This document shows positions 1,859 through 24,640 of a stretch of 64,000 nt of DNA, piece by piece. Under the pieces are notes generated by a model, which ran no database searches, was not told where the DNA came from, and was given only the letters and a program-made list of their open reading frames with translations. The position numbers were made by a program, and so were the translations under genes. Position 1 is the first letter of the stretch, and each line of letters starts with the position of its first letter. Source of the stretch: Oopsacas minuta (taxonomy: Eukaryota; Animalia; Porifera); assembly GCA_024704765.1 (NCBI GenBank), contig JAKMXF010000002.1:62001-126000 (forward strand), given 5' to 3'.

Positions 1859-2482
1859 TATACGTTACTGACAACTCAATGATTTATGTTATTAATAATA
1901 TAAAATATTTTACAAATACAGTGATAACAAAATTGAGTTGTCTTTACAACAACCTAAGTTGTTTAGCAGTGTGTTCATATAGGCGATACTAGTACACTAG
2001 GTTGATGAGTAAAGTATCTCAAAAAATTTGTTACAGTAAGAAATTATAGAGGCTAGGTCTAAATCATTTTTCTATGCGGACCTATCTGTCAACTCCTAGG
2101 GGCTAAAGCGCCACCCAACAATGAAGGGTGGGCTCGCCCCTAATTTTGCCCCGAATTTATACGTATTGCATAATTCATAACAACAAGTTGTCAACCATAT
2201 CCGCTAAAATATCAGAAATGGGGCGAAATTTGTGTCTGGGAAGCATATTGTTGCAATATGCAATTCTTTGATGGCTTAAAGACAGTTAAATAATGCATCT
2301 TTCAATTGAAAGTGAATGACAGGAAAAGAATGTAGGATGACTATTAGTTATCACGTGCTTCTCTAGGAAAAACACTGTGTGTCCTTTTTCTCAATTTATG
2401 TAGCATATAGGATAATTATGATTATCATTATAATGTATGATTCACAAAATCCTATGTAATAAACATAGCCTACTATATATAA

Positions 2483-3430
2483 GGTCTGTTGCGTGGGATT
2501 TTAATTCATTAGTATTATTGGACCAGAGAAAATCTTCCACCGTGAGATTTTAACTCATCTATATTAAACGACTGTGAATTTATAGGATATCCGACCAGGA
2601 TCATTTCAATCACTAATTTGTCCTATTTGTACTCATCAGATTTACCCGAAATTAATATCATTCGGTAGAGGAGTGTTGGACGTTGTATAAAATACAAATT
2701 TCCTAAGTATTTTTTAACTTTTACTTATCTATTTTGTCATGACGAGTAGGGTCGCTTCTCTATTACAAACGACGATATAAAAGTGAGAATTCAAATCTGA
2801 AATTTTGTGTTTATATTTGTGACCCATGGATGTTTATATAAATTATATTTCATCCAAAAATTCCTAAAACTAGAAGGGATATAAGTATTCCAATCTGAAG
2901 TCAGAGTTATATTGGTTGGGAAAGTATCATTTTGCAAAAAGTAGGGTCAGTTCAAATTGATATTTGATATCACAAATCGAACTCAAACTATTATATTTTG
3001 ATAACAATCGATAGCTGAGACATGGGATGTATACCATTATGTCGCTATAATCATGAAATTCTGAAAGATACAGTCACAATGAGGTTCTAAAAATGACATA
3101 ATTGTCGTTATTTATCATTTTCGAAATTTCAATTTAGAGTCAAATTTCAAAAATGATTCTTTCTCAGAATCGCCTGCTTTTATATTATATCATTCAATTT
3201 CCTTTAAAAAAAACAGAGGTCGATAGTACTTTTAATGAATATTAAATAATAATATTTTGGAAAATGTTTTTCCACTAGCCATATCATTATTCACATTGTC
3301 TAGTACAATACTAGATTATCTCATAAGACTAATGAGCATGACTGTTATCTACGCATGAAGTAACACAAGTTATAACTCTTCTCTTGGTTCCCATTCTAAT
3401 GTTGCTACAACAAACGAATATTCAAACCGC
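2483..3430 (+). repeat. Left long inverted repeat
   Basis: Near-identical to the reverse complement of 7540-8485 along its whole length. Confidence 0.9.
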
Positions 3431-3508
3431 ATAATACTGAAATTACGAATTACATTTTCTATTTTTATCCATCACAATGAAATATACATATTGACAAATA
3501 GTCAGATA

Positions 3509-4347
3509 TCTTCCAGAAAGGTTTAGAGAAGGATATCTAAATAGCTCTGTTGGACACACAAACGCATCCAACTTTGAAGAGCTTGAAATATTGTTACGCC
3601 AAAATGTCCGCGAGATCTTAGCAGAATTGGATGCCCGTTTTGGTACAGATCAATCAGGCATCATGAAGGCTGCTGATTGCTGCTTATCAAGGTCATAAAA
3701 CTTTCTTAACAAACAGGAATTGAATACACTATCTGAACTGTATGCAATAGATATCAAAGATTGTGAAATAGAATTTTTCCGTTCGTTTATTGCTCGGAAA
3801 GATGAATCTCAGCTAAATACTTTGATCGATGTACTGGATGTGATTGACAAAGATATTTTCCCTGATGTTTTCAACTTATACCAAATTCTTGTGACTATCC
3901 CTCAGACGTCTTGCATGGTTGAGAGAATGTTCTCATCTGTTAAGAGAATAAAAACACGTTTGCGCTCACAAATGACCACTGAGCGTCTCAACCATCTTGC
4001 CCTGTTATCTATTGAAAAAGATATTGCAGAAACACTTTGTTATAATGATGTGATCGAACATTTTAAGCAGATGAAGCACCGCCGCTTTCTTTTGTAATGT
4101 CAAATAGTATCCCTGAATTGAGTTTAGTATCTTAATAAATGCTCTTACTATAATGTAGACTAATCTAATGCTCCCTAGCCTAGTAATCTGGTACTTTATG
4201 AATTAAAAAGGTTATACATGTAAGAAAAGGAGACTGGGTCGTACTTGTTATACACAAGTAATTAACTTTTCAAAAATATTTATCCCTGCAGTTGCCCTCC
4301 CGAAATACTTCTTGCCCCCCGAATGTCTTGCTCTAGCTACGTGCCTG
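3509..4347 (+). mobile_element. 3' half of a hAT (ZMYM1/Tip100-like) transposon, displaced by inversion
   Basis: Encodes LPERFREG...ELDARF...SCMVERMFSSVKRIKTRLRSQM (hAT dimerisation domain containing the catalytic E; ORF 3720-4097). Ends in TIR TAGCTACGTGCCTG followed by TCTCACTA. Confidence 0.9.
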
Positions 4348-4842: not shown

Positions 4843-6571
4843 CGCCGTTGCCTGATTGTGTCTCTTACATCAAAATTTTCGAATTCATATTTACCAGACA
4901 AATCTTTGGCATATTCGACAACCTTGTCAAAATCGAAATTGACCAACCTTTCCCTCAGATCGGCAAGTAATATCAAACAAGAAGAAACAGTTGCTGTCGA
5001 CTTCTGAAAGCTTTAGTGCAAAAATCAGAGTAATCATACAGCCTACCAAAGTAAACTAAGATGGTCATAAATTTCTTTGTTTGTAGACTACCTAGTAAAG
5101 ATTTAGCTGCTAAACTTGTGTCTGCATCATTATCATTTCCAAATATGCTTAAAGTATCAAGTATGCAATCAAACCGACGCAGAAACCTTTCCACCTCCAA
5201 AGAACGGGAAGACCAACGAGTACTACATGAACGTGCAAGTTCAAGAGCTTGGACGTTGGGATAGCGCTCACCCTGGACGTCTATGAAAACTGCATGTCGC
5301 TTTGTTCCATTCATGAACGAATACGTCAAATCCAATATATCAAAGAAAGATTTCATCAGAGGATGTCGTTCAGCAGTTGCAGCTAATACTAAGTTAAGCC
5401 TATGTGAAGCACAATGAACATATGTGGCATTGCGATAACCTGCTCCTTTCATGCGGGCTTGGACACCACCGTGTATTCCTGACATAACACTAGCCCCGTC
5501 GTAACCCTGCCCTACACATTTCAGAGGATCGAGCTCAAAAGGCTTAAGTAGCTCTATCAGTTTTTCAGAGATGGTGCCCGCATCCATGTCCTTCAATTCA
5601 ATAAAGCCAATAGCTCTTTCTCGGACATTACCTTTATGGATATATCGCAAAGAAGCACCTAACAACTCCTTCTTAGATGCATCTTTTACTTCGTCAGCTA
5701 GAATAGCATAACAAGACGCGATTTCTACTTCACTTTTAACATAGTCTAGGAGCACTGAAGCGAGTGATGTAAGCAAATCATTTTGAATATCTGGACTTAG
5801 CATTTTTGCATTTCCTGGAAGACTTTCTATCCTCTTGGTCACATTGCTATCATATTTTCCTAAAAGTTCTAATATTTCAAGAAAGTTCCCTTTATTAAGC
5901 GACTGATCTGATTCATCATCTCCTCGAAGAGGAATATCTTGTTTGGCACAAAAAGCAATAATGTCAAGAACAGTCATTAAATGTTTCCGATTGTCATCTA
6001 TGAATTTCTCATTTCGAAAATTTGGATCCAGTTGCTTATCTACCGTCCCTATTATTTGATGAATTGCCCAGACTTTCTGTGTTTCAACAGCTGCCATATG
6101 ACACACAGAACTATCGTGCTTCCTGCACTTGTCGCCAAGTTTCCTCCAGTCACAAAGTCCTTTTGTTGAAAAAGTTGCTTCAGCTGTTGATCCTCCAAAA
6201 AGCCGACACGGTTGGCAAAATATAGCATCGAGTTCTTTGCTATACTCTATCCAGGAGAATTGGGCATACCAATGAGTACTAAAATGTCTACCGGCCTCAT
6301 TTTTTGGGAAGATAATAGAAGGCTGCCTCGGTTTCTCACCATTTTTGGACAAATCATTTACAGTCACAATTGGTGATTGTATATGAGTCGTGTTTAAACT
6401 TGGAGTTGAAATAGTTGTACAAGAATCGGAAGTTAAAGGGGTCGAAACTTGAAGACTCGTAACAACAGGCTCTACCTTCTCATAATTTGAAGAGACGACA
6501 TGATCTTCGATTTCTATTCGATTTCTTTTAAAATATGCCTGAACTTTGCTTTGTTGTAGTCTTTTAGTCAT
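4843..6571 (-). pseudogene. hAT transposase, N-terminal part (TTF zinc finger, DUF4371-like region, DDE core)
   Basis: 532-aa ORF with WIEYSKELDAIFCQPC, ILADEVKD, QGYDGASVMSG, CASHRLNL and TRWSSR. Frameshift near 5010; truncated at the inversion breakpoint after TIRQRRL. Confidence 0.9.
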
Positions 6572-7102: not shown

Positions 7103-7539
7103 TATATAAAAACGAAAACTTCCAAATTTATCTGGGGGGGCGAGAAAAACTTTTGGGGGGGCGACCGCCCCCCCTTGCCCCCCCGTAGCTACGTGCCTGT
7201 AGTGAGATCAAGATAATTCTACATCTTACTTGCTCATACGTTGGCAGGGAAAGATGTAAAAATAATTAAATCAATATTTAACAAGGCATTTATTGAAAGA
7301 AGAATTATTCTTAACAATTGTGGTGATTGTTATGACTAAACTGGGACGAAAGACTAAAAGAGTTAGAACAAGTAGTCATTTTATCCAAATATAAATTTAG
7401 AGTGAGTGAAGTTATCCGTTTTGAATACTGCGCTAACCTCACAGTCGCATTGTCCCGTGAAAATTATACAATAATACATACGTAGTATGGAGATTAGACT
7501 TAAGAATATTAGATATATAAAAATAGATGAGTATTTGTG

Positions 7540-8485
7540 GTTTGAATATTCGTTTGTTGTAGCAACATTAGAATGGGAACCAAGAGAAGAGTTATAACTT
7601 GTGTTACTTCATGCGTAGATAACAGTCATGCTCATTAGTATTATGAGATAATCTAGTATTGTACTAGACAATGTGAATAATGATATGGCTAGTGGAAAAA
7701 CATTATCCAAAAAATTATTTTTTAATATTCATTAAAAGTACTATCGACCTCTGTTTTTATTAAAGGAAATTGAATGATATAATATAAAAGCAGGCGATTC
7801 TGAGAAAGAATAATTTTTGAAATTTGACTCTAAATTGAAATTTCGAAAATGCATAAATAACGACAATTATGTCATTTTTAGAACCTCATTGTGACTGTAT
7901 CTTTCAGAATTTCATGATTATAGCGACATAATGGTATACATCCCATGTCTCAGCTATCGATTGTTATCAAAATATAATAGTTTGAGTTCGATTTGTGATA
8001 TCAAATATCAATTTGAACTGACCCTACTTTTTGTAAAATGATACTTTCCCCCTCCAATATAACTCTGACTTCAGATTGGAATACTTATATCCCTTCTAGT
8101 TTTAGGAATTTTTGGATGAAATATAATTTATATAAACTTCCATGGGTCACAAATATAGACACAAAATTTCAGATTTGAATTCTCACTTTTAGATCGTCGT
8201 TTGTAATAGAGAAGCGACCCTACTCGTCCTGACAAAATAGATAGGTTAAAGTTAAAAATACTTAGGAAAATTGTATTTTATACAACGTCCAACATTCCTC
8301 TACCGAATGATATTAATTTCGGGTAAATCTGATGAGTACAAATAGGACAAATTAGTGATTGAAATGATCCTGGTCGAATATCCTGTAAATTCACAGTCGT
8401 TTAATATAGATGAGTTAAAATCTCACGGTGAAAAACTGTCCCTGGTCCAATAATACTAATGAATTAAAGTCTCACGCAACAGGCC
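7540..8485 (-). repeat. Right long inverted repeat
   Basis: Reverse complement of 2483-3430. Confidence 0.9.
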
Positions 8486-9297
8486 TACCAAGTGATTATA
8501 GATATTGGAACAGAGATGCACGACGCGACAGAAGCGTAATTTCATGTAGATGTCCCCTTCATGCAAAAATCACCATTACTGGGTATAAGAAATTATTCTA
8601 GGCTATATATTCGTACTCAACAGGCATTTGTCGTTTTTCATACATTTTCCTCATTTAAATGCATGATAGTAGTAGTAAACATATGTGTTAATTTCACATT
8701 ATGATCTCAACAAACGATACCTAACTTGTCAAATATTAACTGTAAATAAATCAATTTATCCTTGGGATGTAGAAGCAGTGGTTCATCTAGATATGGAGGG
8801 CTCAAAGTGGGCTTAAAATGGGAGTTAGGAAAGAATGGGTACTTTCATTTGAAATAGACATATATTATGTATTATCGGCATATAGATTATCATACGCTAG
8901 GAATCATTTAGTGCATTCAATTTTTATAAGGTTTCTATATATCATGTTCTGACGTCATAGCTTTCTGTTGAATTTTTTTTTTTTTTAATATCTGATTGTA
9001 TAACAATGTTAGCCCTATAAATTGTATTACTTGGGTATAGTATTTCATAGCCATGGAAGCAATTACAACTGTTACAATTTCAAAATTACTCATGATTTTA
9101 TAAAATGACGTAATACACAATTTTTCATAATTTTTGCTTTGTACTTCATACTTCTCAATGCGTTTTTAGAATTTATTAATATCTTTTTGCTAATATATAT
9201 ATCAATTCTGACAATTTTTGGATAGAAATAATAAGCACTTATATTAAGAGATGTTTATTTGTATTATATATTTGCTAACATTCAGCAAACTACGTTG

Positions 9298-13296: not shown

Positions 13297-14588
13297 CAAG
13301 GGTTGTTCAATAAGTAATGAAACTAATGCATCGAATTCATATTCTAGTTAATACAGCTCTAAGCCTAATATCAGATTACAAGCCTAACTTGATTGTCTAA
13401 CTTCTATACAATATAGTCTTTGCTCTACTAGCATATTCTTCAGTATATAGTTTCATTTGTATAGGCTACTTTTGACAACTAATGGATTTTGGCAAAGAAG
13501 TTAGACGACAAATAATTTGGTACCTGTGGAAAAGAGGAAGGCTGGCTCATACATTCTTCGTGAAATGCAGGATATTTTTGGTGATGAACATCCTTCGAAA
13601 GCCACCATATATAGATGGATCGAACGTTTTGATAATGGCGATGAGGAACTCCACGATGATCCTCGTCCAGGCAGTCCAACTTCCTCCCAAAAACCGCAGT
13701 AGTGTCGAGAGGGTCCAAACAATTTTGGATGAGGACAGACGAATAACCCTGAGAGAGTTAGAAGAGAGGTAGGCATATAAAAGTGACACTACACTCGATT
13801 ATCACTGAAGATCTGGAAATGTCAAAGGTAACTACACGTTGGGTCCCAAAAACTTATTTCGAAAGAACAAAAACGCGAAAGGGTCAGAGTTGGCAAAGAA
13901 TTACTTTCAAGATACAAGGCAGAGGAAGACTTTTTGGATCGTATAGTGACGGGGGATAAACTTGGTTTCATTATTATGAACCAGAGAGCAAAACTCAATC
14001 GAACAGTGGAAGAGACGTGATGAACCTGGACCCATCAAGGTAAAGGCCGCAAAATCAGCAGGGAAGAGAATGGCAACAGTATTTTGAGATAGGGAAGGAA
14101 TTATACACCTTGACTGATTGCTTGAGAAGACAACCATAAACAGTGATTATTACGTTGACGAATTGAAAGAATTGAGTCAAGCGATTAAACGTGAGAGGCG
14201 AGGCAAGTTGACACTTGGCGTATTGCTGCAACATGACAACGCAAGGCCCCATGTAAGCTCCAAGACAATGGCTGCAATTGACGACTTAGGATACGAATGC
14301 CTCCCTCATCCCCCCATATAGTCCAGACCTGGCTTCCAGCGACTACTGACTGTTTGGAGAGATGAAGAGACCTCTTCGAGGGAAGAGATTTCAGGATATC
14401 AAACGGCTGGAGTATGAAATAAAACAGTGGGAAAAAGGAGCCCCTAAAGAATTCTATGCCACTTGGCTGGAAAAGTTACCAGAACGAATGGAAACGATGT
14501 ATAAAGCTAAAGGGGGAATTTATCGAAACATTTGATGATCAATTATGAATTATGAAAACAAGTCTCATTATTTATTGAACAACCCTTG
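13297..14588 (+). mobile_element. Full-length defective mariner (DD34D), 1,292 bp
   Basis: TA|CAAGGGTTGTTCAATAAGTAATGA ... TCATTATTTATTGAACAACCCTTG|TA. Motifs IVTGD, LQHDNARPHV and HPP(Y)SPDLA..D, with multiple frameshifts. Confidence 0.95.
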
Positions 14589-14590
14589 TA

Positions 14591-14830
14591 GTTGAAAGTT
14601 AGGGTATATGTAAAGGCATACACAAATCGTCTGAAGTGTAACATGAGCATTCGGGCAAATTTCTTTCGTCAGACCAGAATTGTTCAAGACGTCCTTTGAG
14701 GGTAAACAATGAAGGAGTAGATACAACGTGCAAGTCAATTTGTTCCATAGCTTCACTGTTCTTTCTGCAAAAAAGTTAGATCACATTTTGATTAGGTGGC
14801 TTGTTGCATGGAGGCAACAATACGAGGGAG
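14591..14830 (-). mobile_element. CR1/L2-type LINE, 3' tail segment
   Basis: Minus strand reads NFFAERTVKLWNKL...LKGRLEQFW, the typical CR1/L2 ORF2 C-terminus. It is contiguous with 22885+ once 14831-22876 is removed. Confidence 0.8.
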
Positions 14831-15172
14831 CAATGGCGTAACAATAGGCGGTTCATTGAACCAGGGCCCCGATGTCCAGAGGGCCTCCTAAACTTTAATT
14901 CAAATTTGGTATACGCAGAATTTCTGATAAACTTTAATCACATTGAATTAATTAAATATAATTATTCCAAGATCGGCAGAACCCGTTTCTTCTTATCAAC
15001 TTTTCGCCTTGGCCTGTACGATTCCATGTGTGATGTCACCTGAGTACTTTAATTTGCTTTCGCCCGGCCTGTAACAATCATGTTATTGAAATAATATTAT
15101 CATGTTATCTAATCATAAACATCTAAAATACATTAGCACAACTGTACAATATTACACTACTCCTACTATGTG

Positions 15173-15558
15173 ACAAGAATAGCTGTACATCGATGTTTGA
15201 GCGTCTAAGATTCAAAAAATTTTCTGAGTGACTTGACCATAAGACCCCCATGATGATCCTGGATACGCCACTGAATAAGAATAGATATCTTAGCAAAACG
15301 TTCTTATATTATGTTTTGTTTCATCTAAGTACAAGAATAGTATACGTATATGTATACCATTATAGGCTTAATGGCTTTGTGACAAGTGTAGAGATCCATG
15401 CGTCTGAAAACCATCCTTACATGTGAGAAGGTGGGTTTTGAATTTGGAAGAACATATAAAAGCTCCGAAACTCATGAAATTGTGAATTATAGTTTGTCCA
15501 GATGGGGCTTCGCCCATAATTAGGAACTGGGGGGCCCCAAACCTTAGTTACGCCCCTG
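15173..15558 (+). repeat. Direct repeat copy A (hAT right-end module, ~385 bp)
   Basis: Aligns with 22491-22876 and ends TTAGTTACGCCCCTG. Contains a second internal right-end motif GGATACGCCACTG at 15261-15273. Confidence 0.9.
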
Positions 15559-16949
15559 TAAATAGGTTAGCATTAACACAAGTTTCAAACATGTTTACGC
15601 TTAGTTGCTCTCAAAATTCTCTTAATGACTTGAAAAATGAAAACAAGATTTGTAAATGTAAAATGTGAATAAATCTATCTATCTATGGCCTATGAAAATA
15701 TGAAGGTAATGCAGCAATTTGTACAAGTTTGGTCTAATTGATCCATTGTCGATAATTTGTTAGACAATAATTAGGAGGAATAGACATAGCTTGGTGCCCA
15801 ATAAATAGATATTCATACCGCTGTGTTCATTGGCGCCAAGCTTTAGGAAAAAAAATCAAACCTGGGCTGGTCAGCCTACGAAATTGGCGATATCTATATG
15901 TAAATTTCACAAAATACAGTTTCTGCCTCTGAACCCTGGAGGTCCAGACCCCCAATTACCCAAACTTGGAGCTTATGTCTGTGTTGCTCTCGCTCGATAA
16001 ATTCCTGTGAATTTCCATAGTTGCTTGAGTCTGTTTCAAGGGCGTAGACTCATGGTATGATTGGTAGAGAGGCTTTATGCCATGTAACAAGATTGGTAGG
16101 GTCACCCATACATTTTTGTGTTACTTTATATGGATAAAATACAAATATTGATAGGGCCATAGCCTTGCCAACCCTACCGGAGCCTACGCCCATGATGGTT
16201 ATTCATTATGCAATCCTATTCCTCAGATCATTGTTAGCGTCTACGCCGGTAGAACCGATAGTATACGTAAGCATATTCGCCAACATTCTACAGGATCTCT
16301 GGATTATCCCGAGATACCAAATTCAGGTAATGGTTTCATATTTCTGGTTATTTTCCGATGAAATATGGAAAAATCAACAGGGCATCGGAGCAATGAGTGT
16401 TAAGTTAGTGGAGTTGCAGTAGCGAAATGTGAGTACAACTTAACACTTAATATATCAGTCAATTTCCTATCAATTCATCTGAAATTTGTTGAGAATCTCA
16501 ATCCAGTATGGGGTTTTCCTCCAATTCAATAATTAATACCTATCACGCCACAATGATGTTGCAAATTTTTAAACCTAATCTTCATAGTCAGGGTTTCTTC
16601 TAAGATTGTTTGGAAGGGGGGAATTCTGATACGTTTTCAGGTAAAAGAGGAAATCAGGTAATATTATTACTAATTTTCATTTCTTAAAATAGGAAATATA
16701 ATAATTGACACTTCTGAAAGTCGCCATTTGACAGGATACAATCTAAAAATTTACGTTCTGATATAAAACAGATCCTCTGCAATATAGCATACCACATTAT
16801 TATTGTCTAAGTATATGGATCTTGACCATTTCTTCGCAGCCTTACATTCTTCAAAATCACCTGTTAGTTCTAGCTGCAGTGAGAAAGATTAATTCCCTGA
16901 TGATATTGAAACCTAAGAATCAGATCCTCCTCCTAAAAAATACTGATTA

Positions 16950-17780
16950 GGAAATATATGCAATCAAGTTAGCAGAAATACAACAAGAAGGGGGAAAGGA
17001 TTTCTTATGGCTGGAAAATGACCACGACTAGGAAGAAGCCTTTTGTAAAATTATTCGAGTGCATGAGTCACAATCTCTTCAAAGACCGGAAATGTATGGA
17101 CTACAAAACAATTTAAGAATCGGAAGAAGGCAGTGGAAGAGATAAGAGCACATTCTAAGAGCAATTCTCATATTCGACACCCAGTATCAGAATTATTAGC
17201 TGCCCAAATGGTGACGGTCGGTCCGTAGTTCAGCAGTTACATGTTTTACGAGAACAAGAAAGGATAACAAATAGAGTGGGCATCAAGTCTTTACATCGTT
17301 TTACTCATCTCCGTGCACCAGCACATTTCCTACACTACAAATTTTAATAAGGTGATTGAGTTGATCATATCCTGTGGAGGTGAAGATCTGAATAATTTTT
17401 CTGAAAGGGCTGGTAGAAATGCTAGTTACAATTCAACAGATACTGTTTTTGATTTCGTTGAGCCCATAGGGACCTGGATTGAAGAGTCTCAACTCAAACG
17501 TCATAATATGGAAAATACTTTAGATAATTGGCAGATGAGCGCATTGACGTTGCAACTATTGAGGAGTTTTCTATATTCTGTGGGTGGGTCGAAAGTGGAG
17601 AACCTTTTGAACACTTTTTAGAAATCATTCCATTGAAAAGAGCAGATGCTCAATCTATATATTCCATTATGAATGATAATTTGAAAGAAAAGAACATTCA
17701 AAACAGTAAGCTTGTGGGCATTGACTTTGATGGAGCAGCATCCCTTTCTTGGAAGAACACAGGGTACAAGCAAGGATGAA
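16950..17780 (+). pseudogene. hAT transposase fragment (C17orf113/ZNF862-like)
   Basis: TTNFNKVIELIISCGGEDL, MADERIDVATIEEFSIFCGWV, FLEIIPLKRADAQSIY and GIDFDGAAS, with frameshifts. Confidence 0.8.
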
Positions 17781-17787
17781 GAATAAT

Positions 17788-18660
17788 TCACCAAATGCTC
17801 TCTTTTTGTATAGGGTGTCTCCAAAGTTCAGATACAAACCATTTTGTGTTTCTCCACCGAGAACATGATTTCTCTCCAGTAGGACAGCCAGAATGATCCC
17901 CTGCCACATTATCTACCAGTATATGTAGAGCAGAACATAGCTTGATTGATGCTAAACCACGGTGTTGATAGATGACAGTAGAGTAATTTGCGGCGATAGA
18001 ATCAGCCATCCATTCAGGTGGTACATAAGTAGTATTTATCGTGCTTCTCTTCTTCTTCAGACGCTTGACTACATGCGTTTTACATTCCTCTTTCCGAATC
18101 TTCACAAGATTGTATGGATTTGGTTCATCCACTTGCTGAAAACTTCTTGAATATCCCTATCTGACAAAATCCGAGTATGCCAGGTGATTCTTCTCCAAGG
18201 AGCGTCCCTAAATCCTGTTGGCTATTTCTGGCTCCATACCTTGAGAATATCCAGTATAGTTTCGAATACAGTTTGGATTATGACATTCTAACCACACCTC
18301 GTACTCGGCTGAGCGGTCTTTCCGTTTCTCCTCTGTCTAGATAGAGCACTTCTCACAGAGACGGCTGGTGATTTCGTAGTCCAGTACCTTCTTGGTGTCG
18401 GTAGAGATAAGAGCACCGAAACATATGCTGAAATATAATCCTCTGGTTTTCCAAGAGCTATCGAAGCTGACGGCTACGTTGGTAGCGTTAGAATCAGGTG
18501 ATACTTCGCAGTCTGACCTTTGGGGTAGCTGTTCAGCCGCATCAGACATGGCAGTCCCTACTGCAACTTTTATAACAGCTTCCAGACTGTTCAGATATGG
18601 AGATGTCATGCTCTGAACTGGTGGGGGAAATCAAATATTGTAAATAGTTTGTGAAAGTTA
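17788..18660 (-). pseudogene. Kolobok-type (Pfam Mutator-like transposase domain) fragment
   Basis: VAVSFDSSWKTRG, TKKVLDYEITSRLCEKC, H..NCIRNYTGYSQGMEPE, IRKEECKTHVVKR and HSGCPTGEKSC. Confidence 0.7.
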
Positions 18661-18699
18661 CGCCACGAAATAACAGCAATGAATTATCATTGATTAATC

Positions 18700-19110
18700 A
18701 TATCTGAGGAGAATCCGTTTATAATTCAGTGGATCAATGTCGCTTATGACATGTTCGATATTAACATAAGCATTCCTTTGTAGATGCATGGGTGCTAGTC
18801 CGGCTAAACATATTGTGTTCCACAACCATTATTCAGCCTTTTCAGTGTGCTAAGAGAACTTTCTGCAGTTGCAGTGGATGCAGACATTGTTGCCAAATAT
18901 TCAGTGCACTGCAGATGTCTGAAAATGTGTAGACATACAAACTAGTTTCACACGCAGTTTGTGGTTAATCATTCTATGAAATTGTACACCATTTCTCCAA
19001 ATATTCAGTTCCTTCTTCATCATACTCACATCCTGATCTATAGGCATCGAATATATCCCTACAATTTGAGAAATCTGTATCTTGATAAGATACTTCTGAT
19101 CGATCAATAG
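18700..19110 (-). pseudogene. hAT C-terminal dimerisation-domain fragment
   Basis: Manual translation: LATMSASTATAESSLSTLKRL ... LAPMHLQRNAYVNIEHVI. Confidence 0.6.
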
Positions 19111-20191
19111 AAGATGGCTGGCTGCTATTACCGAGGTGAAAAAATATTGCGTTCTTTTGAAAACGAACGTATAAGGGTGTTTTTATAATTACGCCGCATT
19201 GATAAGAGATATATATGATATAGAAATGTATTATATAGGCAGGCAAGTCTGATATATACAATATATTGGCTATCCTCAATTGGCACAAATTATGGAGGTA
19301 TAAGTGGATATTCACGAAACATGCCCCATCCCTGGTCTCAACTGTAACTTCGAAACATGCAAACTTTTTGATGACAAATTTTGCATTATCTACAGAAACT
19401 GTTTTAGATAACTTTGTATATCAACATCTTGGTCATATATCAATATATTGAACGTTCTAGATGGAGTATCATATAAAATATTTGCCATTTACGCTAAAAA
19501 ATAAGGTTGTTTGGATCTGAAATGTGGTTTTGGCGAAATATCAATACATTTATTGGGGTATTATGCTCAAGTTCCGTATTAACAGCGATTATAGAATTGC
19601 TCATCAATATATATCAACTTTCTTCTATCCCTGGCTCAAAAGTAATGAACAGGCCTTGTCTATAATAGGCTATGCTATTGTGTAAATTACAAAAACATGG
19701 ATTCCATCCATGGTGTACTGTTGCCTACAGTCTCGAGGCATTGTGGAATTTAAACTACCACTAGGATTAAAGATATGAAATGTTTAACAATAAAAAACCT
19801 TTGTAGGCCCACGAGTTTCAAAATAAGACCTTGATAGAATAGCTCATTAGTGCGAATTCTATTGTAACTTTCCAAGGAAAATATTGAAATAATAAAGAAT
19901 TACAATCAGTTTTCACAACATACAATTCTGGTGGCTCAAATCTAAGTCTCGTTGTGGTAAGTATTCACAAAATTGGCTCCAGAATTTAGTCATCCGACCG
20001 GCTCAATTAACCTTAGTTCAAGGATATAGCACCTAAGATTACGATTCGCAGCCGATCCAATAATTTGTATTACGAAAACCGAATTTCAGGAATGAACAAA
20101 ATGATATTTAAAATGGAAAATATTGAAAACAAATCATGAATTGTAATAATTCATATGAATCAATAAATACAAAACTATCTTTAACAACTTG

Positions 20192-21745
20192 TTAACACCA
20201 AGTTTGCTGTAAATTGATTGCTATGTCTGCATTCGATTTGTTAAATTTGGGCGGTATTGGAGGCGGATGTTCAATTAGTGGGGACAGAATTGGAGAGATT
20301 AGCTGATTGGTTTTGGGAGAATTGCCTAAGATCAAGGAAATTTCCTTATTCTGATTGGGATCAACACATAAATCAGAAAATGCATCTAACTCACAAGAAG
20401 AGTGTGAATACTTTTGGATTGGTGATTTTTTATCATTGTGCTTGTTAAATCCGCTTGAAAGACCTCGCGAAATCTTTGAAAAAAATCTTTTAGGCGTTTT
20501 TGATTTAGTAGATGGAATTGAAGGAATATTAGGATTCAAAGATTGAATATTTTGCAAAGGTTGTTCTGGATTAGACGAATCTTCGCCATTAAAGGCAACG
20601 GAAGTTTTCATTGGCAATATGGAATTGGAATATATTGAAGGAGTAGAAACCGCCCTGATTAATTGACAATCCCTGGTATCAATAACTGTACTACTGGGAT
20701 TATCGTTTCTATCAGAGGGATTTCTTATGAATTTCATATCAGAAAAGTTTTCATGAATTTCGTGTCGAAACGAAGGTGATGAATCTAGGCTAGACAATTT
20801 ACAGTCCATATTACTTTTAGAAGTTGGCAACTTGTGTAATGGTTTGCACACGAGATCATTAGAACATTTTTTTGGGTCTTCAGAACTTAATGGATGGAGA
20901 TGGTCATAAAAATCTGAGAGTGTCATAGAAGATTGACGAGTGTGAGTAAGGAATGCATTTGAGTTGAAAGATTTGCTCCTCGGCCAAGCTTTTTCCAATA
21001 CTGGATCACAAAGCAAAGTTTGATTGTTAGACGGATCTTTACTGATAGAAAGTGTACCAGTGGGTAGGGTAGAGTTAGATGCTACCTGACGCTTGAGTGT
21101 TTTTTCAGGAACTGGAGGTGGTTGAATAAAAGGCTGAGATAACTGCTCATTATCACATATGGCAATATCGTCTAATCTATTGATGTTTTCAGAGCAGGAA
21201 TTTGGAGGAGAAAGAGTAGACAATTTGTAATTTACAATAAACTCGCCAAGAATATCGAAAAGGGCAGGAATATCAAAATGCGAAAAAATCTCAAATTCAA
21301 CAGAATTCTGAACAAATGAATCGTTGATGTCTAAATAGGAAGTTAAAATTGATTCAATCTCCTGTTGAGAAGGAATCCTTTGAATATTTTCCTCAGACGT
21401 TCGATATACAAGGGGATATCTCTTCGAATCCCCCGCACTGAATTCATATATAACTGCAGTTTCTTTAAGAATTAGAATTTCTTCACGGATACACATCAAT
21501 GATTGTAGTAATCGTTGGTCCTCCGCTTTAAGCTCAAGACAATAATTGTTCAATGTATTAAAACAATAAGAATTATCATTATTGAGTTCTAAACAATAGT
21601 TATCTTGATCAAAAATAGAAGTATCCAAAGAAGTCGTCACCTTAGAACTAGAGTTTATGGTTGAATCTTCTATAATCGATGTCTTAATTAAATTGAATGA
21701 TTTTGTTTTGAATTTCTGAGGTATTGGTGGTGGAGAGGCAGACAT
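20192..21745 (-). CDS. Uncharacterised 517-aa Ser/Pro-rich, largely disordered protein; intronless
   Basis: 1.55-kb stop-free frame in AT-rich DNA. First ATG (MSASPPPIPQKF) is at 21745. PPPIP motifs occur at both termini. One predicted helix, LELKAEDQRLLQSLMCIREEILILK. No TE motifs. Confidence 0.75.
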   Translation of the reverse strand: MSASPPPIPQKFKTKSFNLIKTSIIEDSTINSSSKVTTSLDTSIFDQDNYCLELNNDNSYCFNTLNNYCLELKAEDQRLLQSLMCIREEILILKETAVIYEFSAGDSKRYPLVYRTSEENIQRIPSQQEIESILTSYLDINDSFVQNSVEFEIFSHFDIPALFDILGEFIVNYKLSTLSPPNSCSENINRLDDIAICDNEQLSQPFIQPPPVPEKTLKRQVASNSTLPTGTLSISKDPSNNQTLLCDPVLEKAWPRSKSFNSNAFLTHTRQSSMTLSDFYDHLHPLSSEDPKKCSNDLVCKPLHKLPTSKSNMDCKLSSLDSSPSFRHEIHENFSDMKFIRNPSDRNDNPSSTVIDTRDCQLIRAVSTPSIYSNSILPMKTSVAFNGEDSSNPEQPLQNIQSLNPNIPSIPSTKSKTPKRFFSKISRGLSSGFNKHNDKKSPIQKYSHSSCELDAFSDLCVDPNQNKEISLILGNSPKTNQLISPILSPLIEHPPPIPPKFNKSNADIAINLQQTWC

Positions 21746-22490
21746 AGTATCGAAAAATATATAAGATCTCTTTTTTGAAAAAATAATCAAGAATACTATC
21801 GAGTATAGTCTGCACAATAAAAAGAATTGGATATTATAAATATACACTATAAAACGCAATTATGTCATTAAAGAGTCAGAGCTTTAGAACCTTATGTGTG
21901 GAAGACGTATCACCTGGAATTTATCTTACAAATAATTCTATGAAGTGGATTAATTTAATATTGTTTTCTAATTATGTAATATGGTACCATTACAAAATGT
22001 AATGTAAAATTGTCAGCTTTATACCCCAGTAGTTTAACAAATGTACTGTAAAAGGACCCAAAATATTTAATAAAGGTTACATAATATGGGAACAGAAATC
22101 ATAAAACAGTTTGTTGATATAATTGTTAATGATTACTTTTAGTATAATAATTAGTTATAAATATAATCTATAAAAATATAAAATTCATATTTAGTGGATA
22201 GAAAATAATCATTGGGCTCTCACAAGAGTTCAACTAGAAAATATTGACTGAATCATTTGATAATTTTGGTTTTGAGCAAAATGCAGGAGAAATATATTTC
22301 TGACAGAATGTAGAAACTCATTTATCCATGCTCAAAAATTAATGAAAATATCAAACAATCAAGTTTTGAGCAAAAGTATCTATAATGAAGTAAGGAGAAT
22401 AGAGAAAAATAATGGGAAGTGAGTTTCAAAGATTCTGATACACGTAGGGAGCGTCTGCCATCTTTAGTGGATGTATATTTCCTTACAAAC

Positions 22491-22876
22491 ACAAGAATAG
22501 CTCTACATCGATGTTTGAGCGTCTAAGATTCAAAACATTTTCTGGGTGACTTGACCCCAAGACCCCCATGATGATCCTGGGTACGCCACTGAACAAGAAT
22601 AGATATCTTAGCAAAATGTTCCTATATTATGTTTTGATTCCATCTAAGTACAGGAATAGTATACGTATAAGTATACCATTATAGGCTTAATGCTTTGTGA
22701 CAAGTGTAGGGATCCATGCATCTGAAAACCATTCATACATGTGAGAAGGTGTGTTCTGAATTTGGAATAACATACAAAAGCTCCGAAACTCATGAAATTG
22801 TGAATTATAGTTTGACCTGATGGGGCTTCGCCCATAATTAGGAACTGGGGCCCCCCAAACCTTAGTTACGCCACTG
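22491..22876 (+). repeat. Direct repeat copy B (hAT right-end module)
   Basis: Aligns with 15173-15558, with scattered substitutions. Confidence 0.9.
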
Positions 22877-22884
22877 CAAGGGAG

Positions 22885-23345
22885 TGTCGTCTAGGTCGAT
22901 ATTGGGAACATAGAGAGGGTGGCAATGTGAAATTACACAAATAACACCATTTAGGAATTTTCCATGTCAAAATTAAGTCAGCTCTTCTTCTATTTTCCAA
23001 AAAAAATTAAACCGAGAATAAGTATTCAAACTCTGTATAGAAGATGGGAAACCATATTCACGCACTGAATTGTCATTTTTGGAATGTTCTCATGCCTTAC
23101 AATATCCGATTTCATAAAGTGGACCAAACAATATTGTATATCCAAGCTTTGACCTTATGAAGATCTTGTAAAGTTATAAAAATTTCAGGCGTGATACATA
23201 TATGCGTGCATTAAAATAAGCCAATAATTCTGTTTGCGCTAAACGCAATCTTTGCTACATGTTCAGAAAAGATAGTCTGTTGTCAATCCAAAGTCCCAAG
23301 TCTTTGACTAAATTGCTCTCTCCAATTATTTTTGAATCAACTAAA
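22885..23345 (-). mobile_element. CR1/L2-type LINE ORF2 segment (post-RT)
   Basis: VKDLGLWIDNRLSF.EHVAKIAFSANRIIGL ... RRRADLILTWKI-like region, ending ...RPRRHS at the hAT junction. Confidence 0.8.
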
Positions 23346-23347
23346 TA

Positions 23348-24640
23348 CAGGGTACGTCAAAATTATGGTCACCCTCAATGAAAATTTAACTTGTAGTTTT
23401 AGAACTTAGATTCTTAACGGCCCATATCCTACTATTCCTATTACGAATAGCCACTTTTACTATTACTCCCACATTCAATAAAATTGCATAGATCTATTCC
23501 TGTTATTAAAATCAATTAAAAATTCATTTCTGTCTAACATCAAAATGGATGTCAAAAATATGAAATCAAACATTAGAAACCGAGCAGTAGCTATGTTGCA
23601 AGCTGGCAAAACAAAATTTTATGTTGCTAAGGAAGTTGAGAAATCGATCCGAACAATAAAAAGGTGCTTAAAGGAGAAAAGAGGTGAGAGTCTCGAACAT
23701 CGGCAGGCTGCTGGTCGTCCAAAATCACTTTCTGGAGCATCGGAGATGTTAATCTCAAAATCTTTGGGAAACGACGCCAGTCGACATGATCTTTGGCTAT
23801 GAGAATCACAGTAAGGGGGAACCCTGTCTCTAAAGAAACAATTCACCAGCATGTAACCAGTGTTGACAAAGCCAAGCAGTATAAAGGGCAAAACACCCCA
23901 TTTTGTCCGAAGTCCAGAAGGCAGGTAGACAAACGTTCTGTCAAGACAATAAAAATTGGTCAGTCAAAGACTGGAAAACGTTCTTTGGTCTGACGAATCC
24001 CCATTTCAACTTTTCCAATTAAGCAATCATCAGAATGATCGCATTTGGTTGAAAACCAATTTGAATATTCCATGTCAAAAAACAGTCAAATTTCCTCCTA
24101 AAGTGCTAAAGTGAGGTTTAGACCTCTTGATTTACAATTCCGCCTCCTATGAGGACTGATACATTTCTATGCAGCAGCATACAATGTGGAAGAAATTCTA
24201 ACAAAGGTTTGTCTACCTTCACCCAAAAGAAGAGCTTCTATAGGTACAATCTTGGAGAGAAAACATGTCCCAAGCAGGATGTGTTTCCATTAGGACACAA
24301 GAATGGTGTCGTCAGAACCTCGTTGCATTCTGGGAGAAAAAGGAATGGCCAGAAAACTCTCCAGACCTTAACCCTATCGAAGATCTTTGGTCGATTATGA
24401 CATCTAAGCTTGAAGAGAAGGCACCTGCCGTAATCTCGAGGCGCTAAAATTTCAATTGAAATTAGTCTGATCAGAGATCTGCCAGTGCTTTTGGAAAGTT
24501 TAGTGAGTGGGGTGCCTAGGCGAATTCAGAAATGTATACAGATGGGAGGAGATTATATCGGCAAATAATTAGGTCTATTAATGCATTAGTTATATTTTTC
24601 TAGTACATATAGTAAGGGGACAATAATTTTAAAACACCTC
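23348..24640 (+). mobile_element. Defective Tc1-like element (DD34E type) inserted in the LINE
   Basis: TA TSD and diverged TIRs CAGGGTACGTCAAAATTATGGTCACC. Motifs VLWSDESPF and EWPENSPDLNPIEDLW. LINE codons P-Y-L-V-D rejoin across the insertion. Confidence 0.85.

Follow-up and report, generated by a model that had tools for sequence, protein, structure and literature searches.

In maize, a full element, a stretch of flanking DNA and a fractured element enclosed together by an 8-bp duplication are described as the arrangement of Ac/fAc Composite Insertions and macrotransposons in the accounts of PMC4270019 and PMC9910405, the former citing Huang & Dooner 2008 for the macrotransposons. In animals, the account of Pack-TIRs by Tan et al. 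2021 (PMC8277862) presents them as duplications whose parental copy can be identified, in most cases no more than 15 kb away, and holds that the single-copy Pack-TIRs of animals mostly arise without transposition. Maize genetics has documented well the alternative transposition that draws on the ends of two neighbouring hAT elements, whereas few natural fixed examples exist in animals.

Here we describe a composite block of 8,046 bp (14831-22876) from the glass sponge Oopsacas minuta, which interrupts a CR1/L2-like LINE within its degenerate 3' end; all positions refer to the window, i.e., the whole stretch of 64,000 nucleotides that was analysed. In order, the block consists of a complete 728-bp MITE, a cargo of 6.9 kb that is for the most part single-copy, and a second MITE copy that is 5'-truncated and keeps the right end. 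It is like the maize Ac/fAc units in that a complete element and a fractured one reduced to its 3' end enclose several kb of ordinary DNA, with the outer 5' and 3' ends facing outward in the standard orientation and an 8-bp duplication around the unit. At 8 kb we consider its size to be within the maize range (10-28 kb reported). The sponge elements are non-autonomous MITEs of 728 bp, whereas maize Ac is autonomous and 4.6 kb long; the sponge event is old, with no excision, reinsertion or donor site observed. Moreover, the maize Composite Insertions are duplicative, whereas the sponge cargo holds the only copy found of a conserved gene. The block also resembles the animal Pack-TIRs as characterized in PMC8277862: a TIR element encloses non-transposon host sequence, the arrangement exists as a single copy, and its breakpoint is internal to the element. 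Unlike in Pack-TIRs, neither the window nor the read depth over 18.7-20.3 kb nor the gene calls revealed a parent (a decayed parent elsewhere may exist), the filler opens with the right half of the element repeated, terminal repeat included, and the cargo carries a complete, putatively functional gene rather than a fragment.

Results

The features of the locus are listed in Table 1. The two termini of the block, CAATGGCGTAAC on the left and GTTACGCCACTG on the right, are terminal inverted repeats: when the right end is reverse-complemented to CAGTGGCGTAAC, it agrees with CAATGGCGTAAC in 11 of 12 letters. With at most one mismatch, this terminal 12-mer occurred five times in the 64-kb window, against 0.15 occurrences expected. 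The outer flanks, CGAGGGAG and CAAGGGAG, were identical at seven of eight positions (chance probability 1e-4 to 7e-4). By contrast, TAAATAGG, which follows the inner right end GTTACGCCCCTG, matched the left flank at only 2/8 positions. Therefore, the complete MITE (MITE-A) was not inserted here on its own, and the target-site duplication encloses the whole composite. A sequence-only reading of this DNA had paired a hAT left end at 14831 with the right end at 22876 and had seen no matching duplication at the nearer right end (15558); both observations held. Each outer end is thus part of a different element; the two elements are directly oriented and are separated by 6.9 kb of mostly single-copy DNA.

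Table 1 Features of the composite block and of the LINE that hosts it
Feature	Position	Strand	Description
3' part of the LINE	14591-14830	-	End of ORF2 (SNFFAERTVKLWNKL, ~14736-14780) and 3' UTR; decayed, 5'-truncated; by translation; single-copy
Left copy of the 8-bp target-site duplication	14823-14830		CGAGGGAG; 7/8 match with 22877-22884
MITE-A, complete hAT-like MITE	14831-15558	+	728 bp; left repeat CAATGGCGTAAC at 14831-14842, right repeat GTTACGCCCCTG at 15547-15558
Cargo	15559-22490		6.9 kb; mostly single-copy DNA, old transposon debris, one intact gene
Mutator-like transposase gene fragment	17791-18630	-	Multi-copy family; Pfam PF20700, E 7e-11 and 2e-7
P0001, intact intronless 517-codon gene	20192-21745	-	Conserved orphan family; ORF 20195-21745, stop 20192-20194
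fMITE-B, fractured MITE	22491-22876	+	Right 386 bp only; MITE-A orientation; consensus-like repeat GTTACGCCACTG at 22865-22876
Right copy of the 8-bp target-site duplication	22877-22884		CAAGGGAG; single change, CpG-type
Upstream part of the same LINE	22885-23356	-	ORF2 C-terminal region: KDLGLWIDNRLSF, LYKIFIRSKLGY, LENRRRADLILTWKI, RPRRHSL at the junction; by translation

As had been proposed, a minus-strand LINE with one frameshift is restored when the block is removed. In the right flank the reading frame FFLENRRRADLILTWKIPKW...RPRRHSL is open to the junction without a stop, and SNFFAERTVKLWNKL is read in the left flank after the frameshift. The four motifs LYK..R..L.Y, LE.RR.R.DLI..YK, RGH..KL and FF..R.V..WN.L were all present (4/4), in order and on the minus strand, across the junction; such patterns are those of CR1/L2 ORF2 tails, and the LINE is putatively CR1/L2-like. 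Two LINE-tail patterns occurred once each in the six frames of the 64-kb window, exactly here and in the correct order: RR..DLI..WK, unique in the window, lies 131 nt (~44 codons) upstream of FF..WN once the block and one copy of the duplication are removed. The left part of the LINE is at unique read depth (a high-copy repeat stops at 14590), and the copy is 5'-truncated near 23356. Searches with blastn and tblastx found no second copy of the LINE in the window or in four foreign loci, a word search with a 70-aa piece of the tail gave no candidate for a reference LINE, and there was no YxDD or other RT motif in the 64-kb window. The interpretation of the block as one insertion-type unit within a single LINE copy is supported.

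The MITE is putatively assigned to hAT from the 8-bp duplication, seen at this one insertion, and from its CAG-type ends, which mark hAT elements. It belongs to a multi-copy family: read contigs at least 85% alike stacked ~7-23-fold over 14900-15500 and comprised many variants and internal deletion joints. No autonomous hAT partner was found in the 64-kb window, whose two hAT transposase genes (DUF4371 plus hAT dimerisation domain) do not have these ends. In the search for a transposase partner, 13 bases at 3589-3601 that agree with the left end were discarded as a chance match, lying within hAT coding sequence. MITE-A also contains an additional right-end-like motif at 15262-15273.

The module shared by the two copies (15173-15558 and 22491-22876) was 93.5% identical, with 25 substitutions and 2 indels (K2P 0.068), and its homology begins abruptly at 15173 / 22491. 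Other members of the family were unbroken across 15172/15173 (read contigs X1 records 1 and 2), which identifies the right-hand piece as a fractured copy, comparable to fAc. Of the sites private to the inner copy, the five with the best support (15276, 15304, 15415, 15497 and 15500) all had the family-majority letter in fMITE-B. Given these letters and the K2P of 6.8%, the right halves look like two separate family members and not like a fresh duplication. In the best 40 of 520 rows, private differences from the family majority numbered at least 4-6 in the 342 bp of the left half and at least 5 in the 386 bp of the inner right half; such similar densities in both halves of MITE-A are as expected for one copy, a weak indication at the best 40 of 520 rows. 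The assignment of the left half to either the inner or the outer right half likewise drew on the best 40 of 520 rows and is weak. The octamer TAAATAGG at the start of the cargo is presumably an old target-site duplication of MITE-A.

Fragments of three other transposons had been proposed within the cargo, of which the Mutator-like one was recovered, covering positions 100-199 and 253-354 of the 357 of profile PF20700, and the remaining two were unconfirmed. Read depth was high over 17.7-18.63 kb, and the homology to the Mutator-like family stops at 18627. The gene P0001 presents three PPPIPxK-type motifs, RQSSMTLSDFYDHL and a C-terminal QTWC. Seven homologues in other assemblies (502-551 aa, 28-42% identity) were aligned with it, and P0001 retains all the invariant columns of the alignment. 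Judged by this conservation, the predicted 517-codon ORF, which the sequence-only reading had called intact and host-like, is a real, conserved host gene. Searches for Pfam or PDB relatives of P0001 found none, and no RNA runs containing this stretch were found.

In the other assemblies, the P0001 family has one copy per assembly; MITE ends are absent nearby, and none were found adjoining the homologues in other species. Regarding synteny, the 10-kb flanks of homologues from four other assemblies share only transposon pieces with the window or with one another. A search of 5.8 billion sequences gave no further family member from O. minuta, the cargo had no second copy at DNA or protein level in the 64-kb window (-15/+41 kb), and read depth was single-copy over 18.7-20.3 kb. 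P0001 therefore looks relocated, or its parent lost, rather than duplicated: with no parental copy in the window, in the reads (18.7-20.3 kb) or among the gene calls, cut-and-paste fits better than copying.

The read contigs came from four runs of one sample, which probably also gave the assembly, and were compared with the stretch 14300-20299. The left junction (14830/14831) was bridged by X2 record 8 and X3 record 16, and the 15558/15559 junction by X1 record 3, X2 record 9, X3 record 17 and X4 record 24. Two haplotypes, ~1-2% different, both carry these left junctions of the block, and a single X1 contig of 3,674 bp covers 18478 to ~22150. 

Discussion

Our leading reading, to which we give a probability of roughly 0.5, is that alternative transposition moved the block, which would be a composite hAT element like those of maize Ac/fAc. 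The donor site would have held a complete MITE and, 6.9 kb apart in the same orientation, a 5'-truncated copy, with the host gene between them. A hAT transposase acting in trans would have paired the left end of the complete copy with the right end of the fractured one, in a macrotransposition or in its replicative variant, Composite Insertion, and the 8,046-bp unit would have landed in the tail of an old CR1/L2-like LINE, producing the 8-bp target-site duplication. We infer the movement of the unit in one piece, the action of a hAT enzyme and the relocation, as opposed to copying, of the gene. No second composite, empty donor site or empty target allele was found; the window holds no other copy of the composite, and both haplotypes seen carry the left junctions of the block. 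The narrower proposal, that a functional glass-sponge gene, conserved in its lineage and present in one copy, was relocated by cut-and-paste hAT macrotransposition via a complete and a fractured MITE, is tentative and has somewhat less than an even chance of being right. In any case the event is old: the duplication has acquired one change, the right halves are 6.8% apart and the block is common to two haplotypes.

Growth of the block in situ would give the same picture, and we regard it as a possible, though clearly less probable, origin. A simple MITE composed of the left half and the outer right half would have inserted in the LINE and later been enlarged by gap filling or recombination: a break near consensus position 342/343 would have been repaired from the right half of an ectopic MITE copy together with 6.9 kb of its gene-bearing flank, followed by end-joining, or else a circle with right half and cargo would have been integrated by homologous recombination, the parental locus being lost later in both versions. 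The module does start sharply at an internal MITE position, as a break site would, and family members have many internal rearrangement joints at 14920-15460, an interval that includes 15172/15173. Furthermore, the account of PMC8277862 gives internal breakpoints, little or no element loss and homology-guided template switching as hallmarks of the single-copy Pack-TIRs of animals. However, this route needs a parental copy, and there was none within -15/+41 kb, read depth was single-copy over 18.7-20.3 kb and the gene calls held no paralogue. Annealing would normally end the repair after 386 homologous bp, and 6.9 kb of further synthesis is unusual; in addition, the left half and the inner right half seem to have diverged from the family majority to a similar extent (weak evidence, in the best 40 of 520 rows). 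The in-situ route would not be transposase-mediated transduction. The earlier claim of gene transduction by a hAT element keeps its two-element architecture, its duplication and its conserved gene, but transduction in the sense of a duplicated gene is unsupported, as no donor or parental copy was found.

A complex rearrangement or an assembly error, i.e., a chimeric right-hand join or several unrelated events (deletions, ectopic MITE exchanges) mimicking one insertion, seems improbable to us. The region is very transposon-rich, the bridging by reads covers the left pair of junctions and not 22490/22491 or 22876/22877, and the four runs derive from a single sample, probably the assembly's own. 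Against this, the left and 15558/15559 junctions are bridged by contigs in two haplotypes ~1-2% apart, a 3.7-kb contig extends over 18478 to ~22150, and chance would have to account for both the 7/8 duplication and the collinearity of the LINE halves; a false join would require two coordinated errors within repeats of 386-728 bp. Far less probable still is that the block is a decayed long hAT element, autonomous or Ds-like, which was the source of the MITE family and whose internal sequence is the cargo. The plus strand at 17.27-17.78 kb resembles a hAT DUF4371 region by eye, but it had no Pfam match at E<=1 and was unlike both hAT transposases of the window, and the candidate was rejected. 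Nor would one expect an autonomous element to contain, only 728 bp from its left end, another complete right end. The MITE is multi-copy whereas its cargo is single-copy, and the gene is conserved, at one copy per assembly, in other assemblies with no such ends nearby.

Conclusions

Either of the two main origins, composite transposition or in-situ growth, is a known class of event and not a new mechanism. The product in the sponge is unusually legible, as the host LINE has a reading frame that serves as an inherent 'empty site', and the only copy found of a conserved gene lies in the cargo. If the unit did not move as such, the block would represent an unusually large gap filling of the Pack-TIR type, with the parent lost. 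If macrotransposition took place, it would be a natural animal counterpart of maize Ac/fAc, in which gene order was reshuffled in an early-branching animal; and movement of the unit would mean that entire working genes of a sponge can be carried to new sites by small non-autonomous hAT elements.

Ends of the block and flanking duplication

In contig JAKMXF010000002.1 of the glass sponge Oopsacas minuta (GCA_024704765.1), a complete hAT-like MITE (MITE-A) and a second copy of the MITE right half (fMITE-B) enclose 6.9 kb of cargo sequence, together forming the block analyzed here. The sequence-only reading had paired a left end at 14831 with a right end 8 kb away at 22876, and both ends were found as described: the outer flanks, CGAGGGAG on the left and CAAGGGAG on the right, were identical at seven of eight bases, a match expected by chance with P = 1e-4 to 7e-4. 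The inner right end (15558), for which a missing target site match had been claimed, is indeed followed by TAAATAGG, with 2/8 agreement with the left flank; therefore, MITE-A alone did not insert at its present site. The 8-bp duplication, the CAG-type ends and the multi-copy family are those of a hAT-type MITE, and five occurrences of the 12-base end motif (one mismatch at most) were counted in the window, where 0.15 would be expected.

The inner and outer right halves showed 93.5% identity (25 substitutions and 2 indels, K2P 0.068), and their homology started abruptly at 15173 and 22491, respectively. Two of the five end motifs lie inside the right halves, one in each; these right-end-like motifs, GATACGCCACTG (15262-15273) and GGTACGCCACTG (22580-22591), precede the respective true ends by 285 bp. 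A nested or double-ended element may have been ancestral to the MITE family. The search for a transposase partner was negative, both hAT genes of the window having other ends. One hAT-type transposase gene lies between ~950-bp inverted repeats, 95-99% complementary, which are either terminal inverted repeats of unusual length or a duplication in palindromic form around the element.

Features of the block and of its surroundings, in window positions
Feature	Position	Strand	Description
MITE-A	14831-15558		728 bp; first bases CAATGGCGTAAC, last bases GTTACGCCCCTG
fMITE-B	22491-22876	as MITE-A	right 386 bp copied; terminus GTTACGCCACTG
517-codon ORF	20195-21745	minus	inside the cargo
Mutator-like transposase fragment	17791-18630	minus	Pfam
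LINE motif RR..DLI..YK	22991-22959	minus	single match
LINE motif FF..R..WN.L	14774-14736	minus	single match
~950-bp inverted repeats	2482-3431 and 7536-8486		around hAT-type transposase gene
DUF4371	4976-6571	minus	hAT-type transposase gene between the repeats
hAT dimerisation piece	3720-4094	plus	hAT-type transposase gene between the repeats

The interrupted LINE

Minus-strand translation of the right flank gave KDLGLWIDNRLSF, LYKIFIRSKLGY and then FFLENRRRADLILTWKIPKW...RPRRHSL, the last being a stretch of 43 stop-free codons that reaches the junction; the left flank continued the reading with VLLPPCNKPP... and, past one frameshift, with SNFFAERTVKLWNKL. We take the order of motifs across both flanks to be that of the ORF2 C-terminus of CR1/L2-type LINEs. 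A search of the six frames of the 64-kb window with two tail patterns located each of them only once and in the correct order, separated by 131 nt (~44 codons) after removal of the block and one duplication copy, near the ~38-41 codons found between these motifs in CR1/L2-type tails. The claim that a CR1/L2 LINE is rejoined by removing the block is thus probably correct, and LINE continuity across it appears well supported. Neither the window nor the loci retrieved from other assemblies contained a further LINE copy, and a word search for a reference LINE gave no candidate. This LINE is single-copy and has many stops, and is therefore older than the insertion. Adjoining its 3' end is a very high-copy repeat (14300-14590, contig depth hundreds of times single-copy) with ATTATGA-type short repeats inside, whose copies stop at 14590 and in many cases start at 14544; possible identities are a SINE, a MITE and a shared LINE 3' tail.

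Junctions in read contigs

Four read runs containing the stretch (X1-X4), all from one sample and stored as contigs, were compared with 14300-20299 at 85% likeness. The LINE/MITE junction (14830/14831) was spanned by X2 record 8 and X3 record 16, each covering 14565-14863, and the MITE/cargo junction (15558/15559) by X1 record 3, X2 record 9, X3 record 17 and X4 record 24. X1 carried the reference letters and X2-X4 a consistent alternative set, ~1-2% different over 14565-20299 (e.g., 15589, 15631, 15727 and 15763). This split within one sample points to two haplotypes or individuals, so that both left-side junctions would be common to two haplotypes. The MITE family was multi-copy (~7-23x single-copy depth), and other members in X1 records 1 and 2 were unbroken across 15172/15173; hence, left and right halves are normally one unit, and fMITE-B (22491-22876) is a fractured copy. 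Single-copy depth was seen for the cargo at 18.7-20.3 kb, and one contig of 3,674 bp spanned 18478 to ~22150.

The enclosed gene and the rest of the cargo

The intact 517-codon ORF claimed within the block is, judging from its conservation, a real gene. It had seven homologues of 502-551 residues (28-42% identity), the four looked up lying in four different ENA assemblies, and in the alignment of the protein with its homologues (A1) the O. minuta sequence kept all 66 invariant columns. The invariant motifs were MSxxPPPxPxK, PPxPxK, RQSSxTLSDxYDHLxP, SKSxxDCK and the C-terminal PPPxPxK...QTWC. Three proline-rich PPPxPxK motifs were distributed at the N-terminus, middle and C-terminus, the C-terminal QTWC being invariant. 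No relatives or known domain were found in Pfam and PDB; this orphan family looks like a putative disordered adaptor with SH3-type ligand motifs. A protein search for a second O. minuta member found none. The flanks of the homologues shared only transposon pieces with the window and with each other, so the former gene location is not readable from synteny. One homologue occurred four times in alternating orientation on a 9-kb contig (L005:1-9013; 9 member sequences), corresponding either to a palindromic amplification or to a long-read assembly artefact.

Fragments of three other transposons had also been claimed; Pfam confirmed one fragment, a Mutator-like one, and no others. By read depth, the Mutator-like fragment (17.7-18.63 kb) was multi-copy. 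The hAT-like appearance of 17.27-17.78 kb, an impression by eye, was not borne out in Pfam or similarity comparisons. Nothing similar to the cargo was present elsewhere in the window. A ~86%-identical relative of 16670-17305, with two parts skipped, was located at a single other locus in the genome (contigs of 4,652 and 2,681 bp); it is a low-copy repeat or old segmental copy, not the parent of the whole cargo.

Origin of the block

In maize, the transposase pairs the Ac 5' end with the 3' end of fAc, a fractured Ac lying close by (PMC4270019; PMC9910405). The block has the layout of the Ac/fAc macrotransposons and Composite Insertions formed in this way, with a complete element, 6.9 kb and a right-end fragment in order and an 8-bp duplication around the whole, and by its layout it fits the structural definition of a macrotransposon. 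In such an alternative transposition, a transposase would use the left end of MITE-A and the right end of fMITE-B, moving the whole block. We favour this reading, with a probability of roughly 0.5, because a single step then accounts for both the outer duplication and the orphan inner end. It is also ranked first since the two right halves appear to be distinct members of the family, the outer copy having the family-majority letter, and the inner copy a different one, at the five best-supported sites among the variants listed (15276, 15304, 15415, 15497 and 15500), and since the left half (14831-15172) seems, among the same variants, to have a level of private divergence similar to that of the inner right half (15173-15558).

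The main rival, rated less probable, is growth in place. A simple MITE in the LINE would have suffered an internal break for which another MITE copy served as the repair template, with synthesis running into the flank of the template and end-joining after; a related variant invokes recombination with a circle. Transposition-independent gap filling was argued for most single-copy animal Pack-TIRs, which have internal breakpoints and little element sequence lost, by Tan et al. (PMC8277862). Pack-TIRs have an identifiable parental copy of the enclosed sequence. Growth in place needs such a parent as well, but the window, the read depth at 18.7-20.3 kb and the O. minuta proteins of the family showed none for the block; this result fits cut-and-paste and is a further reason for ranking alternative transposition first. 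Moreover, 6.9 kb of extra synthesis beyond the 386 bp homologous to the other broken end would be unusual. That the block reflects misassembly or a more complex rearrangement is unlikely, and that it is a decayed long hAT element is very improbable. As to the hAT gene transduction proposed in the sequence-only reading, the two-element layout with a real gene inside stands, and the block may have moved as a unit.

The block belongs to known kinds of event and is not a new mechanism; what distinguishes it is the clean 'empty-site' frame of the LINE together with the only copy found in O. minuta of a conserved gene.
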